DNA from: Sminthopsis crassicaudata
Taxonomy: Eukaryota
Reading direction: 5' to 3'
Assembly: GCF_048593235.1 (NCBI RefSeq)
Contig: NC_133622.1
Coordinates: forward strand, 239,289,198 to 239,353,197
DNA: 64,000 nucleotides
Positions 853 to 63,032 of this stretch are shown here, in pieces. Below the pieces are notes generated by a model. That model ran no database searches. It saw nothing but the letters and a program-made list of their open reading frames with translations, and was not told where the DNA came from. Both the position numbers and the translations under genes were made by a program. Numbering within the stretch: the stretch's first letter is position 1; the number at the start of each line of letters is the position of its first letter.

Positions 853-3800
853 ATGGCAGGAAATACAGAATTAGTAATTTTAACTGTAAATGTAAATGGG
901 ATGAACGATCCCATCAAACGGAGACGGATAGTAGATTGGATCAAAAAGCAGAACCCTACAATATGTTGCCTACAGGAAACACACTTAAAGCAGGGAGATA
1001 CATACAGAGTAAAGGTAAAAGGTTGGAACAGAGCCTATTATGCTTCAGGTAAAGCCAAAAAAGCAGGGGTAGCTATCCTTATCTCAGATCAAGCAAAAGC
1101 AGAAGTAGATCTCGTTAAAAAGATAAGGAAGGAAACTATATCCTGCTGAAAGGTAGCATAAATAATGAAGCCATATCAATACTAAACATATATGCACCAA
1201 GTGGTATAGCATCTAACTTTCTAAAGGAAAAGTTAAGATAACTGCAAGAAGAAATAGACAGTAAAACTATAATAGTGGGAGATCTCAACCTTGCACTCTC
1301 AGATTTAGACAAATCAAACCACAAAACAAACAAGAAAGAAATTAAAAAAGTAAATAGAACATTAGAAAAACTAGGTATGATAGACCTTTGGAGAAAACTG
1401 AATGGCAATAGGAAGGAATATACTTTCTTCTCAGCAGTTCATGGATCCTATACAAAAATTGACCATATACTAGGACATAAAGATCTCAAAATTAAATGTA
1501 GGAAGGCAGAAATAATAAATGCCTTCTTCTCAGATCACAATGCAATAAAAGCTACATTCAGTAAAAAGTTAGGGGTAAATAGACCAAAAAGTAATTAGAA
1601 ACTGAATAATCTCATCTTAAAGAATGACTGGGTGAAAGAGCAAATTATAGAAACAATTAACAATTTCACCCAAGATAATGATAATGATGAGACATCATAT
1701 CAAAATCTTTGGGATGCAGCTAAAGCGGTAATAAGGGGAAATTTTATATCTTTAGAGGCTTATTTGAAGAAAATTGAGAAAGAGAAGATTAACGAATTGG
1801 GCTTACAACTTAAAAGGCTAGAAAAAGACCAAATTATAAACCCCCAACCAAAAATTAAACTCGAAATACAAAAATTAAAAGGAGAAATCAATAAAATTGA
1901 AAGTAAAAAAACTATTGAATTAATAAATAAAACCAAGAGTTGGTTTTATGAAAAAGCCAATAAAATAGATAAACCTTTGGTAAATTTGATCAAAAAAAAG
2001 AAAGAGGAAAATCAAATTGATAGTCTTACAAATGAAAAGGGGGATCTTTCCACCAATGAAGAGGAAATTAGAGAAATAATAAGGAGTTACTTTGCCCAAC
2101 TTTATGCCAATAAATTTGATAACTTAAGTGAAATGGATGACTTCCTCCAAAAATATAGGCTCCCTAGATTAACAGAGGAGGAGATAAATTGCTTAAATAG
2201 TCCCATTTCAGAAAAAGAAATAGAACAAGCTATTAATCAACTCCCCAGGAAAAAATCCCCAGGGCCAGATAGATTCACATGTGAATTCTACCAAACATTT
2301 AAAGAACAATTAGCCCCAATGTTATATAAATTATTTGAAAAAATAGGGGATGAAGGAGTCCTACCAAATTCCTTTTATGACACAGACATGGTACTGATAC
2401 CTAAACCTGGTAGATCGAAAACTGAGAAAGAAAATTATAGACCAATCTCCTTAATGAATATTGATGCTAAAATCTTAAATAAGATATTAGCAAAAAGACT
2501 TCAGAAAATCATCTCCAAGATAATACACTATGATCAAGTAGGATTTATTCCAGGAATGCAGGGCTGGTTTAATATTAGGAAAACTATTAATATAATTGAC
2601 CATATTAATAATCAAATTAATAAGAACCATATGATCATCTCAATAGATGCAGAAAAAGCATTTGACAAAATCCAACATCCATTCCTACTAAAAACTCTTG
2701 AGAGTATAGGAATAAATGGATTATTCCTTAGAATAATCAGGAGTATATATTTAAGACCGTCAGTAAGCATAATATGCAATAGAAATAAACTGCAACCTTT
2801 CCCAGTAAGATCAGAAGTGAAACAAGGTTGCCCACTATCACCATTACTATTCAATATAGTACTAGAAACGCTAGCCTCGGCAATAAGAGCTGAGAAAGAG
2901 ATTCAAGGAATTAGAGTAGGAAATGAGGAAATTAAACTATCACTTTTTGCAGATGACATGATGGTATACTTAGAGAACCCCAAAGACTCTGCTAAAAAGC
3001 TACTAGAAATAATTCAAAATTTCAGCAAAGTGGCAGGATACAAAATAAATCCACATAAATCCTCGGCATTTTTATATATCACTAACAAAATGCAACAGCA
3101 AGAGATACAAAGAGAAATTCCATTCCAAACAAATGTTGATAGTATAAAATATTTGGGAATCCATCTACCAAAGAAAAGTCAGGAATTATATGAGAAAAAT
3201 TACAAAACACTTGCCACAAAAATAAAATCAGATTTAAATAATTGGAAAGACATTCAGTGCTCTTGGATAGGCCGAGCGAATATAATAAAGATGACAATAC
3301 TCCCCAAACTAATCTATTTATTTAGTGCTATACCAATCAGACTCCCAAGAAACTATTTTAATGACCTAGAAAAAATAACAACAAAATTCATATGGAAGAA
3401 TAAAAGGTCAAGAATTGCAAGGGAACTAATGAAAAAAAACTCAGAGGAAGGTGGTCTAAGTGTACCTGATCTAAAGCTATATTATATAGCAGCAGTCACC
3501 AAAACCATTTGGTATTGGCTAAGAAATAGACCGGTAGATCAGTGGAACAGATTAGATACAAAGGACAAAAAAGGGTACATCTATAGCAATCTAATCTTTG
3601 ACAAACCCAAAGATTCCAACATTAGGGATAAAAATTCATTATTCGGAAAAAACTGTTGGGAAAACTGGAAATTAGTATGGCAGAAATTAGATATGGATCC
3701 ACACTTAACACCATATACCAAGATAAGATCAAAATGGGTCCATGATTTAGGCATAAAGAGGGAGATAATAAATAGATTAGAGGAGCAGAGGATAATCTAC

Positions 3801-4684
3801 CTCTCAGACTTGTGGAGGAGGAAGGAATTTATGACCAGAGGAGAACTAGAGATCATTATTGATCACAAAATAGAAGATTTTGATTACATCAAACTGAAAA
3901 GTTTCTGTACAAATAATACTAATGCAAACAAGATTAGAAGGGAAGTAACAAATTGGGAAAATATTTTTAAAAACAAAGGTTCTGACAAAGGTCTCATTTC
4001 CAAAATATATAGAGAACTGACCATAATTTATAAGAAACCAAACCATTCTCCAATTGATAAATGGTCAAAGGATATGAACAGACAATTCTCAGAGGAAGAA
4101 ATTGAAACTATATCCACTCACATGAAAGAGTGTTCCAAATCACTACTGATCAGAGAAATGCAAATTAAGACCACTCTGAGATACCACTACACACCTGTCA
4201 GATTGGCTAAGATGACAGGAACAAATAATGACAAATGTTGGAGGGGATGTGGGGAAATTGGGACACTAATACATTGCTGGTGGAGTTGCGAAAGAATCCA
4301 GCCATTCTGGAGAGCAATCTGGAATTATGCCCAAAAAGTTATCAAACTGTGCATACCCTTTGACCCAGCAGCGCTACTACTGGGCTTATATCCCAAAGAA
4401 ATACTAAAGAGCGGAAAGAGACATATATGTGCCAAAATGTTTGTGGCAGCTCTTTTGTTGTAGCTAGAAACTGGAAGATGAATGGATGTCCATCAGTTGG
4501 AGAATGGTTGGGTAAATTGTGGTATATGAAAGTTATGGAATATTATTGCTCAGTAAGAAATGACCAGCAGGAGGAATACAGAGAGGGTTGGAGAGACTTA
4601 AATCAACTGATGCTGAGTGAAATGAGCAGAACCAGAAGATCACTGTATACTTCAACAACAATACTGTATGAGGATGTACTCTGA
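853..4684 (+). pseudogene. L1 ORF2 (APE endonuclease, reverse transcriptase, Cys-rich domain) with four lesions
   Basis: Motifs [30 protein letters not shown] and CWRGC...HCWWSC are present. Lesions: -1 frameshift in the A-run ~1117-1121, TAA at 1239-1241, TAG at 1596-1598 (W codon), -1 frameshift in the T-run ~4452-4456. Confidence 0.97.
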
Positions 4685-8251: not shown

Positions 8252-9012
8252 ACATGTAGATGGATGGAGAACAGCAGAGTGCTGACTCTGCTTCCGACTA
8301 ACTATGGAACAATCTTGCCAATGTGTCCAGACTCATCTCTCATTTGGTTCCTTCTGTTGCAGTCCCCTTTCAAAAGCTATAAACAAATAGCTATTGCAAA
8401 GCAAACTTTTTTTTTAACTTATCTCCCCTTAGAAAATGACACTTAAGAGATGGAGGTTTTAGAGGTACTCCTTATGGAATTTAAAGAGTTATAATGTGCA
8501 AAAAACTAGTTATTTTTATTATTGGCACAAATAATATGGGCCAATAGTCAGAAGCTCTAAAGACAATTATGGGTACATGAAGAAACACTTTCTCCTAATA
8601 TATTTTGGTTCTCCTTTTTATGAGGCCTTAAACAAAGGTTAGACAATGACCTGCCAATGGTCATGTAAAGAGGATCCTTATTCCCTAATGCAGATTGGCT
8701 AGATAACTTCTCAAAATCCTTCCTCCTCTAAATTTAGAATAGAATCTATCTTTTGCTCTGTTTCTTTCTCTCTCTCTCTTTCTCTCTCTTTTCTCATTTT
8801 TCCTCTTCCTATTATGTTATTTTTTCTCAAAATGAAAATATCATTTATAATAATACTTATTTTAAAATTAATCCATGTTGCTTCCAAAAATGTTAATAAT
8901 ACATTTCCTCAATTCTCAATTCAGGATTTCATTTGCTGCATTGCCTAGGTAACTCATGTTATTTCATTTTTTCCTTCACAGAATCTATTTTGAATTCTTT
9001 TGAAGAGGAGCC

Positions 9013-9924
9013 ATGATTACTACTGAAAAGAATCAGAGTATTTCAGTGGTATTCATCCTTTTAGGATTCTCAGATTATCCCAATCTATAAATCTGCCTTT
9101 TTGCTGTCACTGTGGTAGGAAACTTGGGCATGATTGTGATCATCAGAAATAATCCCAAACTCCACATGCCCATGTACTTTTTTCTCAGTCACTTGTCCTT
9201 TGTGGATTTTTGTTACTCCACTGGAGTCACACCCAAACTCTTACAAAACCTGGTTGTGGAAGACAGAACTATCTTCTTCAAAAATTACAACACACAATTC
9301 TTTTTTATTGCTGCTTTTGTAGTTGCAGAGACATTCCTACTAGCAGTGATGGCTTATGACCATTTCCTGGCCATTTATAAGCCTCTGCTTTACACTGTTT
9401 CCATGTCACAGAAACTTTCTGCCCTTCTGGTGGCTGCAGCTTATTCATGGGGAATAAGTTCTTCCCTTCTATTTACCTACTCTCTCATTGTCTTGTCATT
9501 TTGTGAGACTAAAATTATTAATAATTTTCTCTGCGAGTATTCTGTCATCCTATCAGCCTCCTGCTCTGATAAACATTTTAGTGAAATAATACTTTTTATT
9601 GTTGCTAATTTTAATGCATTTGGCACTCTCATCATTATCCTTACTTCTGACAGTTGCATTTTTGTCACCATTCTAATAATGCATTCAGCAAGCGGGAGAC
9701 GTAAAGCTTTCTCCACCTGTGCCTCCCACCTCACAGCTGTTACCATCTTTTATGGGACCATCCTCTTCCTCTACTGTGTTCCTAATCCCAAAAGCTCATG
9801 GCTCATAGTTAGAGTGACTTCAGTTTTTTATACTGTGGTAATCCCTATGCTCAATCCACTAATTTATAGTCTGAGAAACAAAGATATAAAAGAAACCCTA
9901 TACATATTTCCACATTTATCATGA
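9013..9924 (+). pseudogene. OR5D-like olfactory receptor pseudogene, close paralog of 39949-40893
   Basis: ATG at 9013. CAA>TAA stop at codon 26 (9088-9090), net 21-bp deletion in TM1, TM3 Cys>Tyr (NYN), MAYDR>MAYDH, native C-terminus lost by a ~810-bp deletion at 9900. Confidence 0.95.
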
Positions 9925-13535: not shown

Positions 13536-14471
13536 ATGCTGATCTCTGGTAGAAATCACAGTGCTGCTCCAGTTATTCTCATTCTCTTGGGATTCTCTGA
13601 CTCTCCAGAATTTCAGATTCTTCTCTTTCTGATATTTTTGACCATCTATGTGATCACTGTGATAGGAAATGTTGGTATGATTGCAATCATTATTATGAAT
13701 CCCAAATTGCACACTCCAATGTATTTTTTCCTAAAACATCTGTCCTTTGTGGATTTCTGTTACTCTACTGCAGTTGTACCAAAGCTGCTGGAAAATTTAA
13801 TGGCCGAAGATAGGACAGTGTCTTTCTCTGCTTGTATCACACAATTCTTCTTTTTTGTTACCTGTGCTTTGACTGACAACTTCATGTTGGCAGTGATGGC
13901 ATATGACCGCTTTGTGGCCATTTGTAAACCCCTTTTGTACCTGGTCATCATGTCCCAGAAACGTTGTGTCCTGTTGATGGCTGCAGCATACATCTGGGGC
14001 ACACTCTTCACTCTGACCTTCACCTACTCTCTCCTTACATTATCTTTTTGTGGGACTAACATAATTGACAATTTTGTTTGTGAATATTCTGGCATACTCT
14101 ATGCCTCTTGCTCTGACAAACATTTCAGTGAGCTGATTCTTTTTATAGTAACTAATATTAATATGCTGAGCACACTCATGGCCATAATTTCTTCTTATAT
14201 TTTTATTTTTGTAACTGTCATGAAGATGCATTCAGTTAGGGCAAGGCACAAGGCTTTCTCTACTTGTGCTTCTCACTTGACAGCTGTTGGACTCTTTTAT
14301 GGAACAGTCATTTTCCTCTACTGTATACCCAATACTAAAAACTCCTGGTTTACTGCTAAATTGGGAACTGTTTTCTATGCAGTGCTCATCCCCATGCTGA
14401 ACCCTCTTATATACAGTCTGAGGAACAATGAAGTGAAGGAAGCACTCAAGAAGTTAGTGGTCAAAGTATGA
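13536..14471 (+). CDS. Olfactory receptor, class II, OR5D-like; intact, 311 aa
   Basis: NHS sequon, GN in TM1, [45 protein letters not shown]; good Kozak GCCATGC. Confidence 0.96.
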   Translation: MLISGRNHSAAPVILILLGFSDSPEFQILLFLIFLTIYVITVIGNVGMIAIIIMNPKLHTPMYFFLKHLSFVDFCYSTAVVPKLLENLMAEDRTVSFSACITQFFFFVTCALTDNFMLAVMAYDRFVAICKPLLYLVIMSQKRCVLLMAAAYIWGTLFTLTFTYSLLTLSFCGTNIIDNFVCEYSGILYASCSDKHFSELILFIVTNINMLSTLMAIISSYIFIFVTVMKMHSVRARHKAFSTCASHLTAVGLFYGTVIFLYCIPNTKNSWFTAKLGTVFYAVLIPMLNPLIYSLRNNEVKEALKKLVVKV

Positions 14472-59260: not shown

Positions 59261-61295
59261 ATTTACAATGATGTGTATAGGTTAAACTGGTCCCTTCAGT
59301 TAAGTAGTGACGCAATTGGGAGAGAATTAGAAAAGTTGGAAAGTCTTATAATTTGAAGCAGCTGAAAAACTAAGTAGACAATCAGTTATGGCTGGTTATG
59401 CTCCTCTCTGATATTAAGGAATGTTAATTGCTTTATGCATCTCAACTGCTTCCAATAATCTTGGCTAGAAACCCAGAGTCACCCCAATCAAAACTTCCCC
59501 TTGTCCTGGTTTTGCAAGGAGAAACAATGTCAGAAGAAAAGTCCCTTATAGAAGATCTGAGTCTAAATTGGTTTTGTTTACTGGAAACAAAATAAAGGTC
59601 TCAGATTAAAATAGTTGGAAAGTAAATGTAGTCAGAATAGGAGGGGATGGCATAAAGGCATTTGGAGTGATCACATCATTCACTCACATTTAATTCAGAT
59701 TTGGAGAGACCATGGCTTTGAACTTAACAGAGAAATTGGGTTTGACAAAATGGGGAATAGCATAAATGAGTTTAAATGATAAAGCATAATTTTAATTTCC
59801 TCATGACATCTAAAAATGAGAAACTTCAGGGGAAAATTGTAGTTGTTGAATTAAAATATTAAGTGTCATCAACATGCATTTATTTAATACTTTTTAAGAA
59901 TAACATACTATAAAGCTGTGAATCATTAAATATAATTCCTGTGTTCAAGGGATTCAAAGCTTTTTTGGAGGTAAAAGACATACTGTTTTTGTGCTTGACC
60001 AATCTCAAATTGTACTGCAATATGGATCACAAATCTTTAAAAGAAGATTTCTCTCAAAGACTTAATTATGACCAAAAATTATACCATGTCATAACCATTA
60101 AACAATAAGCTTATTTACAGAATATTTGGTTCTGAGAAAACAAATTTCTTGTCTTCCTTTTTTTGTACTTTGATCCCTCCCAACTTAAAAGGCTTTGCCA
60201 GATTTTGACCTCTGTTGGCCTAATTTTCTGAAACTCAGATAAGGAGTTGGTAGATGGATAGAAATAAGGCTGCTTTATCTATCTGTCTATCTTCTATCTA
60301 TCAATCATTGTTCTAATCTATCTTTATATATATACACATATATACCAATATTTTGTTATAGATATGTTATTTTACACATTAAGAATATTATGCTAAATAT
60401 AATTTGTTGAAAAAGTGTTTAATATATATTGTTATATCTATATATCTATGTTTTTATATGCTTATATATGTGTATGTATATATTGTATATGTCATCCTTA
60501 ATAATATGAAAGACAACTTGGTATACCATATAGAAAGTTAGCTTCAGTATTAGGAAGACCAAGTTCTAAGTTCTTCCTTTGCTATATACTAAATTTATGA
60601 GTGCTGGCAAATCACTGAACATCCTAGAGCTACTCTGAGCAAGTATTTAAGACTTTAAAGGGATAAAAAAGAAAATAGTGTACATAAGCACAGAGATTGT
60701 CTTTATGTGAGTGCTTCACATACCAAAGAAGTCATATATCTAGCTCCTATTCCTATTAATAATATAAACCAAAATATACAGAATTGAAAGTGAATATTGA
60801 AGGTAATAAGTACTCCATGTATTGAAAGAGGGGCATAGTCACTGGGAGCTATAAGAGGTCATGGAAAGGGGAGCAATGGGAAGAAATCTAATAGATTTCT
60901 TAATTTTCATGAAAAGTTTGGTATTCAGAATCTTAAGAATTGTCATCTTTATCATCTATATATACATATAATATACTTACAAATTCCATTATACTGCATA
61001 AAAATGTTAAAATCTAAAAAAGGACAAACTTTTAAGTTTAAGCTGCATTATTAACATTGTATACATCCCTTTCTTAGATTCAGACAGTCTACTATGCAAT
61101 AAGTTCTGACTTGTGACTTTTGCTAATTTCCAAGTCGTTATTGCTCACATGAAAATTTATCAACTGGCTGTCTTAAGCCTATAATAGAAGCTAGAATTTA
61201 ACAATGTCAAACTACTCACCCTTCAAACATTGCTTCCACTATTTTTAATGCTTTGTTTTTAAAAATACACTTTCTACTTCTTTCCAGCAGGCGCC

Positions 61296-62240
61296 ATGTT
61301 GAATGCGGACAAAAATCAGACTGTTGAAGCTACATTCATACTCATAGGATTTTCTGATTACCCAGATCTTCAAGTCCCTCTCTTCCTTCTGTTTTTGACC
61401 ATTTATGTGATAACTGTTATGGGAAATCTGGGCATGATTGTAGTCATCAAGATCAACCCCAAATTGCACACTCCCATGTACTTCTTCCTTAGTCACTTGT
61501 CCTTTGTGGATCTCTGTTTTTCTACAATAGTTACCCCCAAACTATTAGAGAATTTACTTGTGGAAGATAGAACGATCTCTATCTCAGCTTGCATCACACA
61601 GTTCTTTTTTGCTGTAACAGCCGTGATAACAGAAACATTCATGTTGGCAGTGATGGCCTATGACCGCTTTGCGGCCATTTGTAATCCTCTTCTCTACACA
61701 GTTGCCATGTCTCAAAAGCTTTGTACTTTGCTGGTCACTGGGGTATATTCATGGGGAATAATATCTTCCCTGATATTCACATATTCTCTCCTGGTATTGT
61801 CTTTTTGTGGGACTAATATGATCAATAACTTCCTTTGTGAGTACTATGTCATCCTCACTGCTTCCTGCTCAGATAGGCATTTTAGTGAAATTATACTTGC
61901 TATCTTTGCCAATTTCAATGAATTAAGCACCCTTATAATCATTATCATGTCTTATTTTTTAATTTTTGTCACTGTCATGAAAATGCGTTCTGCCAGTGGG
62001 AGGCGTAAAACATTCTCCACTTGTGCCTCCCATCTAACAGCGATCACCATCTTTCATGGGACACTTCTCTTTCTCTACTGTGTACCCACTTCAAAAAAGC
62101 TCATGGCTCATAGTCAAAGTGGGTTCTGTTTTTTATGCAGTAGTGATCCCCATGCTGAATCCCATAATATACAGTTTGAGGAACAAAGAGATGAAGGAAA
62201 CTCTCAGGAAATTAGTAGGCAACACATATTTTCTAGTTGA
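61296..62240 (+). pseudogene. OR5D-like receptor with a +1 frameshift before TM7 (pseudogene or homopolymer error); paralog of 51157
   Basis: A6 at 62093-62098 versus A5 in the paralog. TM7 ([19 protein letters not shown]) lies in the other frame (ORF 62056-62253). Confidence 0.88.
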
Positions 62241-63032
62241 TATATGTGTTTGATATCTATCTATATTTACATACTTACATATACACACATGCATATGCGT
62301 ACACAGAAATACACATATGTATATATACATACATATATGCTTATTGTGTATATGTTTTTCTTCTAATAAAATATAAATTTTGTGACCACAGACTATTTAA
62401 TGTTTGTTTTCATATTCCCATTGCCTAATATAATCTTTTTTATGTAGTAGGAGTTAATAAATACTTATTGATGAGTAAATTCTGTGGGTAGATAATATTA
62501 ATTTAGCCAATGCTATAAAGGATGAGTATCCCTAGTATTTTCATGTTGATACGGGATGATTCTGTTCCCCTAAACATTCTAGCCCATGGAGTTAGAAAGA
62601 GTATAAAAACAGTGTTGTGGGAATCCTTGATATAAAAACTGGAACTCATCATTCCCATTATTGTACTTTAAAATTTGTGGACATAAACTTTGGAGTTAAT
62701 CCAAATAGAGATGTATCAATAAAATTAATAAAACTCTTAACAGAACACTAGTAGATGACAAATTTAGAGGTTAAAACATGACAGAATGAGAATGGAATCA
62801 CTGACTTTGGTATATCTGACTTCTTTACACTGTGGGTTGATTTTGGCATTTTTATATGGATTTTTTTTTAAGAAACAAGGCAGTTCCTTTTAGAAGTCTC
62901 ATTTTATCTCAAGGTCACTGAGTAAATGGAGAAAGATTTTGTGACCAAAGCTAATGGATGGGAAGGAGAAATTAATCTATAAGAAGAAATAATTTAGAAA
63001 TGACAAAAAAGTTAATAAGAAAAAGCTACTGG

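Follow-up and report, generated by a model that had tools for sequence, protein, structure and literature searches.

[quoted passage not shown] The window analysed here, a stretch of 64,000 nucleotides from assembly GCA_048593235.1, contains a tandem array of class II OR genes. The ORF in question, as assembled, spans 61296..62240 on the plus strand and codes for 314 aa (ORF listing and Pfam 7tm_4). It is that of an OR5D18-like class II OR up to TM6, and continues from there as an out-of-frame tail. Beyond this ORF, the window holds five other OR copies, and intact OR ORFs of 311 to 314 aa start at 13536, 25879, 39949 and 51157. The last of these (51157..52101, plus strand, 314 aa, P0006) is the intact sister paralog used as reference copy, and belongs to the upstream tandem unit. 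The two units are spaced by about 10.1 kb, with about 91% identity in the flanks (aligned bases) and 93.9% in the coding region. The intronless CDS, the position in a tandem OR cluster and the close orthologs establish the descent of the 61296 copy from ORs. A decayed copy, about 94% identical to the OR at 39949, is found at 8756-9896; it has lost 21 bp in TM1, contains an in-frame TAA in its N-terminal part and has diverged at the 3' end, and is a genuine pseudogene within the cluster. Upstream of the array, a 943-aa ORF (1632-4463), similar to LINE-1 ORF2 (reverse transcriptase), appears to belong to a relatively young L1.

With regard to what the as-assembled ORF encodes, the signature motifs MAYDRF and KTFSTCASH are both present. 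In the latter, the replacement A239T is private to the 61296 copy and affects a site of KAFSTC that is invariant in 88 homologs. The Pfam 7tm_4 profile (PF13853) matches residues 34-263, corresponding to profile positions 2-231 of 280, which falls short of a full TM1-TM7 match, whereas in paralog 51157 the match extends to residue 307 (profile 2-277 of 280). Profile positions 239-277 are supplied by a piece of the +1 frame, at 62047-62250. In place of TM7, NPxxY and helix 8, the ORF carries a polar tail of 47 residues. The PMLNPxIYSLRN motif (NPxxY) is absent from the 314-aa ORF and is present unchanged one base on: TM7, PMLNP..IYSLRN and helix 8 lie in the original family frame at 62098..62253 (plus strand), ending with TGA at 62251-62253, as seen in translations and with Pfam. 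The original prediction, made from the sequence alone, had described a 314-aa ORF with a polar tail of about 47 residues lacking NPxxY and helix 8 and, should the A6 be an error, an intact gene ending at 62253. The ORF listing and the end of the Pfam match at residue 263 bear out the former description, and the position of the TGA agrees with the end given in the latter.

The tail itself is acidic and polar. The topology check suggested with the original prediction detects no membrane-helix-like stretch in it, the maximum Kyte-Doolittle(19) hydropathy being 0.34 versus 1.81 for TM7 of the paralog. In a word search of 5.8 billion sequences with tail-only and 90-aa junction queries, no protein shares the 47-residue tail. 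The full-coverage matches P0127, P0143 and P0146, considered as candidate tail-bearing proteins, are ordinary in-frame ORs and were rejected. Whole-ORF, tail and junction queries of the protein collection likewise returned no near-identical fragments of the 61296 locus from sequencing runs.

The origin of the tail was traced in an alignment of nine family members, comprising three dunnart, three Tasmanian devil, one koala and one Dromiciops sequences, and the distant copy of the window as outgroup. At 62093..62098 (plus strand), the 61296 copy has a run of A6, one base more than all its relatives, and the shifted frame starts at codon 268. An extra A relative to the paralog, shifting the frame after TM6, had been predicted, and the comparison is in fact broader, all eight relatives having either A5 or CA4. 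The second predicted difference, near 62224, is a 1-bp deletion (62223..62225, plus strand, from the alignments). One A of CAACAACAT is lost, giving a clean change from CAACAACAT to CAACACAT compared with the third dunnart paralog (L002), and downstream of the deletion the as-assembled ORF is again read in the family frame, for its final four codons and stop. Of the nine family members, which represent four marsupials, the 61296 copy alone carries either indel, and both are therefore derived. The locus thus carries a compensating pair, with +1 at 62093-62098, -1 at about 62224, 42 open codons between them and the frame regained. The eight relatives all share a length of 314 aa, and restoring both bases gives 314 aa for the 61296 copy as well. 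Compared with two sister units, the 61296 unit has private 1-bp insertions at 60064, 60657, 61195 and 62093, all four of which add an A beside an A. For the three in the non-coding flank (60064, 60657, 61195), the run that is lengthened has only one or two bases. The all-A pattern may be due to a bias of mutation, to an artefact of the consensus or to chance.

The original prediction had ascribed the intact appearance of the gene to this compensation. The two indels do cancel each other, but the intact look does not depend on it, as the +1 alone would give an ORF of 313 aa. Without the second indel, the shifted frame ends at a TAG (62234..62236, plus strand), which is also the stop of that frame in relatives and lies four bases ahead of the normal stop. 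The second indel moves the stop from this TAG to TGA 62238-62240, and thereby restores four residues only. In five of seven close relatives, the frame entered after a +1 has no stop before the TAG. A synonymous TAC to TAT change closes it in the remaining two, and in the distant ORs of the window it closes early. Paralog 51157 has the same frame stop-free for 47 codons, in agreement with the prediction that the alternative frame is open there. The normal length of the 61296 ORF is therefore due to a stop-free alternative frame that the subfamily has inherited, and its intact look came by chance with the inherited sequence of the subfamily, not through compensation. Dual coding in the tail frame was considered and rejected. 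At synonymous sites, the tail region has diverged to an ordinary extent (pS 0.151 versus 0.188 for the remaining gene), and hence there is no signal of dual coding or overlapping constraint.

Whether the copy has evolved as a functional gene was assessed from its substitutions and indels. A maximum-likelihood tree groups the 61296 copy with 51157 as its sister (support 83/87) and gives the former the longest tip branch (0.039 versus 0.027 and 0.014). Counting private states along the branches gives 19 non-synonymous and 7 synonymous changes for this copy, with an omega of about 0.8. The ratio of 19:7 differs from the 56:59 pooled over seven relatives (Fisher p = 0.03), but not significantly from those of the nearest relatives (p = 0.25-0.34). 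Moreover, the flank of the 61296 unit has itself evolved faster than that of its sister (66 versus 50 private substitutions), and 4 of 113 highly conserved positions are altered in the copy, a value in the upper fifth but within the range of intact homologs. The signal of relaxed constraint in the 61296 copy is weak. Across the 40 codons spanning TM7, this copy shows no private substitution, and beyond the frameshift indels its 945-bp CDS contains no other disabling lesion or stop. Two private indels are present in the CDS, versus about 10.8 expected under neutrality from the flank rate of the lineage (13 events per 1134 aligned bases). The unchanged TM7 and the deficit of indels therefore indicate that constraint on the gene as a receptor lasted over almost the entire branch, and it follows that the frameshift is either very recent or not real.

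Public annotation already records the frameshift. Searching with the whole ORF retrieved P0001, a 318-aa RefSeq/Gnomon entry named 'LOW QUALITY PROTEIN: olfactory receptor 5D18-like [Sminthopsis crassicaudata]'. This entry is the 61296 locus itself: its first 272 residues equal those of the as-assembled ORF, and the part encoded from 62113 to 62250 equals the +1 frame. The model skips base 62112, which is not an A of the run, hence the reading KLMAH where relatives read SSWLI, and it is neutral as to error or mutation. The locus is thus already treated as frameshifted in public annotation, and is ordinary. As for the assembly, GCA_048593235.1 is called near-T2T in the literature, where the sequencing platform is not given; judging by its date and description, the ONT-only T2T assembly of PMC13408496 appears to be a different one. 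A search for other dunnart assemblies by means of the paralog protein found it recorded on a single contig only. The third dunnart copy, P0005, is located on chromosome CM109186.1 of GCA_048593235.1.

Two explanations of the extra A carry most of the weight, and each draws on observations that count against the other. We see about an even chance that the extra A is real and that the 61296 locus is a young pseudogene or null allele. A one-base expansion from A5 to A6 at codon 267 would then put TM7, NPxxY and helix 8 out of frame; it would represent a very young inactivating mutation, and the null allele may still segregate. The predicted product is a TM1-TM6 fragment followed by the 47-residue acidic, polar tail. 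TM7 and NPxxY are required for the folding and signalling of class A GPCRs, and a fragment deprived of the seventh helix and of the G-protein-coupling face would be non-signalling. The 1-bp deletion in the last codons would most simply be an earlier, harmless change of the C-terminus rather than a selected compensation. Somewhat short of an even chance is the alternative that the assembly consensus is wrong and the true run is A5. The gene would then end at 62253 and encode an intact 7-TM receptor, of 318 aa, or of 314 aa if the A at about 62224 is restored as well. The nature of the lesion speaks for such an error, as a single +1 in a homopolymer is a classic consensus-error type, and so do TM7, NPxxY and helix 8, which are perfectly preserved when read in their own frame, 40 codons being free of private substitutions. 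The same holds for the scarcity of CDS indels, for the 945 bp devoid of other disabling lesions, and for the length common to all eight relatives that is recovered when both bases are restored. The RefSeq model, too, handles the locus as a correctable frameshift instead of calling a pseudogene.

Other features of the run and its surroundings argue against an error and for a real pseudogene or null allele. A6 is a short run, the two indels are opposite in sign, and the second does not sit in a homopolymer longer than 2. An error-rich local patch was considered and is unsupported: the 61296 unit has 24 private indel events versus 21 and 24 in the sister units, so there is no local excess, and the 800 bp of upstream CDS without any indel leave no room for a dense patch of errors. 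The three +A insertions of the flank, in runs of one or two bases, would be atypical as long-read errors. Over 21 kb of the orthologous cluster, the devil assembly GCA_048593225.1, of adjacent accession, departs from mSarHar1.11 by 4 SNPs and otherwise only in long T runs and TA repeats, with no discrepancy in short homopolymers. In favour of a pseudogene are also the derived state of both indels, private among the nine members, and the true decay seen in the same cluster with the copy at 8756-9896. The longest tip branch, the excess of private non-synonymous changes over the pooled relatives and A239T point in the same direction. These substitution data are tempered by the non-significant comparison with the nearest relatives, by the faster flank, by the number of conserved-site deviations, which intact relatives also reach, and by the untouched TM7 and low indel count discussed above.

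Two further readings accept the extra A and nonetheless assign the locus a function; both are improbable. The original prediction had proposed, if the A6 is real, a six-TM receptor with a novel tail. A real, expressed receptor-derived protein of this kind, with the new acidic tail kept open by selection, can draw on an ORF open to normal length, on the second indel that restores the family stop, and on the presence of a putative splice acceptor, an ATG and an AATAAA (62365-62370) at the locus. Yet the open alternative frame was inherited and not acquired, as indicated by the relatives in which it is open and by the two in which TAC to TAT closes it, and a 313-aa product would be obtained even without the second indel. 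The absence of a tail-sharing protein from the searches, the ordinary synonymous divergence of the tail region and the lack of any hydrophobic segment in the tail also count against the proposal. Furthermore, the loss of TM7 and NPxxY removes elements of class A GPCRs needed for folding and signalling. We therefore regard selection for such a protein as very unlikely, and it is just as hard to credit that both indels are real and fixed and that a TM1-TM6 protein with an acidic tail is made in olfactory neurons. Were this true, the non-signalling fragment could still engage receptor-choice or ER-stress feedback, or have another acquired role.

The other reading, by which TM7 would be restored from an A6 gene by recoding at the A run, through either ribosomal frameshifting or slippage in transcription, is the least likely of all. 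Its attraction is the sequence A_AAA_AAG at 62093-62099, a dnaX-type slippery heptamer in phase with the as-assembled frame. Rescue by a programmed -1 frameshift was nevertheless rejected: the heptamer is in phase, but a -1 slip reads the four codons AHGS and then a stop, which gives a product of 272 aa. Only a +1 shift would bring TM7 back, and with AAG as the next codon the A site offers no slow codon that could promote it. As for transcription, appreciable slippage is known from runs longer than A6.

Returning to the preferred reading of a young pseudogene or null allele, nothing in the 61296 case falls outside recognised categories. The copy resembles the marsupial OR5D18/OR5D13-like class II ORs, of which the nearest are P0003, P0007 and P0040 from Sarcophilus, and P0005 and P0006 from the dunnart. 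It has 89-92% amino-acid identity with such ORs over TM1-TM6, and shares the single coding exon, the 314-aa architecture, the tandem cluster, MAYDRF and (K)xFSTCASH, with TM7/NPxxY intact in the adjacent frame. It differs from them by its out-of-frame TM7, by the 1-bp deletion in the last codons, and by private replacements, including A239T. Compensating frameshifts by which broken genes appear intact are a known problem of comparative annotation: TOGA1 masked such pairs, whereas TOGA2 counts the stretch between them as lost (10.64898/2026.06.30.735536). Like the compensating frameshifts handled by CESAR/TOGA, the 61296 pair is of the +1/-1 type, without a stop between the indels, and combines an intact look with an out-of-frame stretch; unlike typical cases, this stretch reaches nearly to the stop, only four residues being restored. 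The CORP classifier (PMC1599758) addresses intact-looking non-functional ORs on the basis of missense changes at conserved positions. As in CORP-type cases, and in young OR pseudogenes that carry a single lesion or still segregate, the 61296 frame passes a length test and lacks functional features, but in this copy a frameshift has led to the replacement of an entire helix, a type of change that homology-based pipelines detect.

The biological weight of the locus is small, young OR pseudogenes and null alleles being common and this one already flagged in RefSeq. It nevertheless calls for caution, because a +1 anywhere after TM6 in the OR5D18-like subfamily yields an ORF of normal length, and filters based on ORF length alone would therefore miscount. 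The claim that length filters would count the locus as functional is accordingly valid for naive ORF-length filters. It does not extend to the NCBI annotation, which flags a LOW QUALITY PROTEIN, nor to mining by motif and homology; in standard OR mining, intact genes are those with conserved motifs and homology and without frameshifts (PMC3308321). Tools that mask compensating frameshifts could call the 61296 copy intact. With regard to the dunnart assembly, the locus represents one candidate for a one-base homopolymer frameshift.

Several minor observations concern the surroundings of the coding region and a related devil gene. Immediately 5' of its ATG, the 61296 copy carries TTTCCAG followed by CAGGCGCC (61281-61298), with an acceptor-like AG, where the paralog has TTTCCATTAGGGACG (51142-51159); the 5' exon junction may thus differ between the two units. 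The sequencing runs found for the same organism comprise six of DNA and three small ones guessed to be RNA (X7-X9). The latter three contain 20-38% of the sampled words of 61000-62400, which, should they really be RNA, would point to transcription at the 61296 locus. Directly 3' of the stop, every member of this OR subfamily has a TA/CA-rich, microsatellite-like sequence (62240-62340, and homologous positions in L001-L007), which aligns poorly between units and is where most indels sit. Finally, the devil gene P0040 (L005, GCA_048593225.1) is annotated from an internal Met, giving 273 aa, and its usual start codon is ATA (Ile), which may represent the loss of a start codon in an otherwise intact OR.
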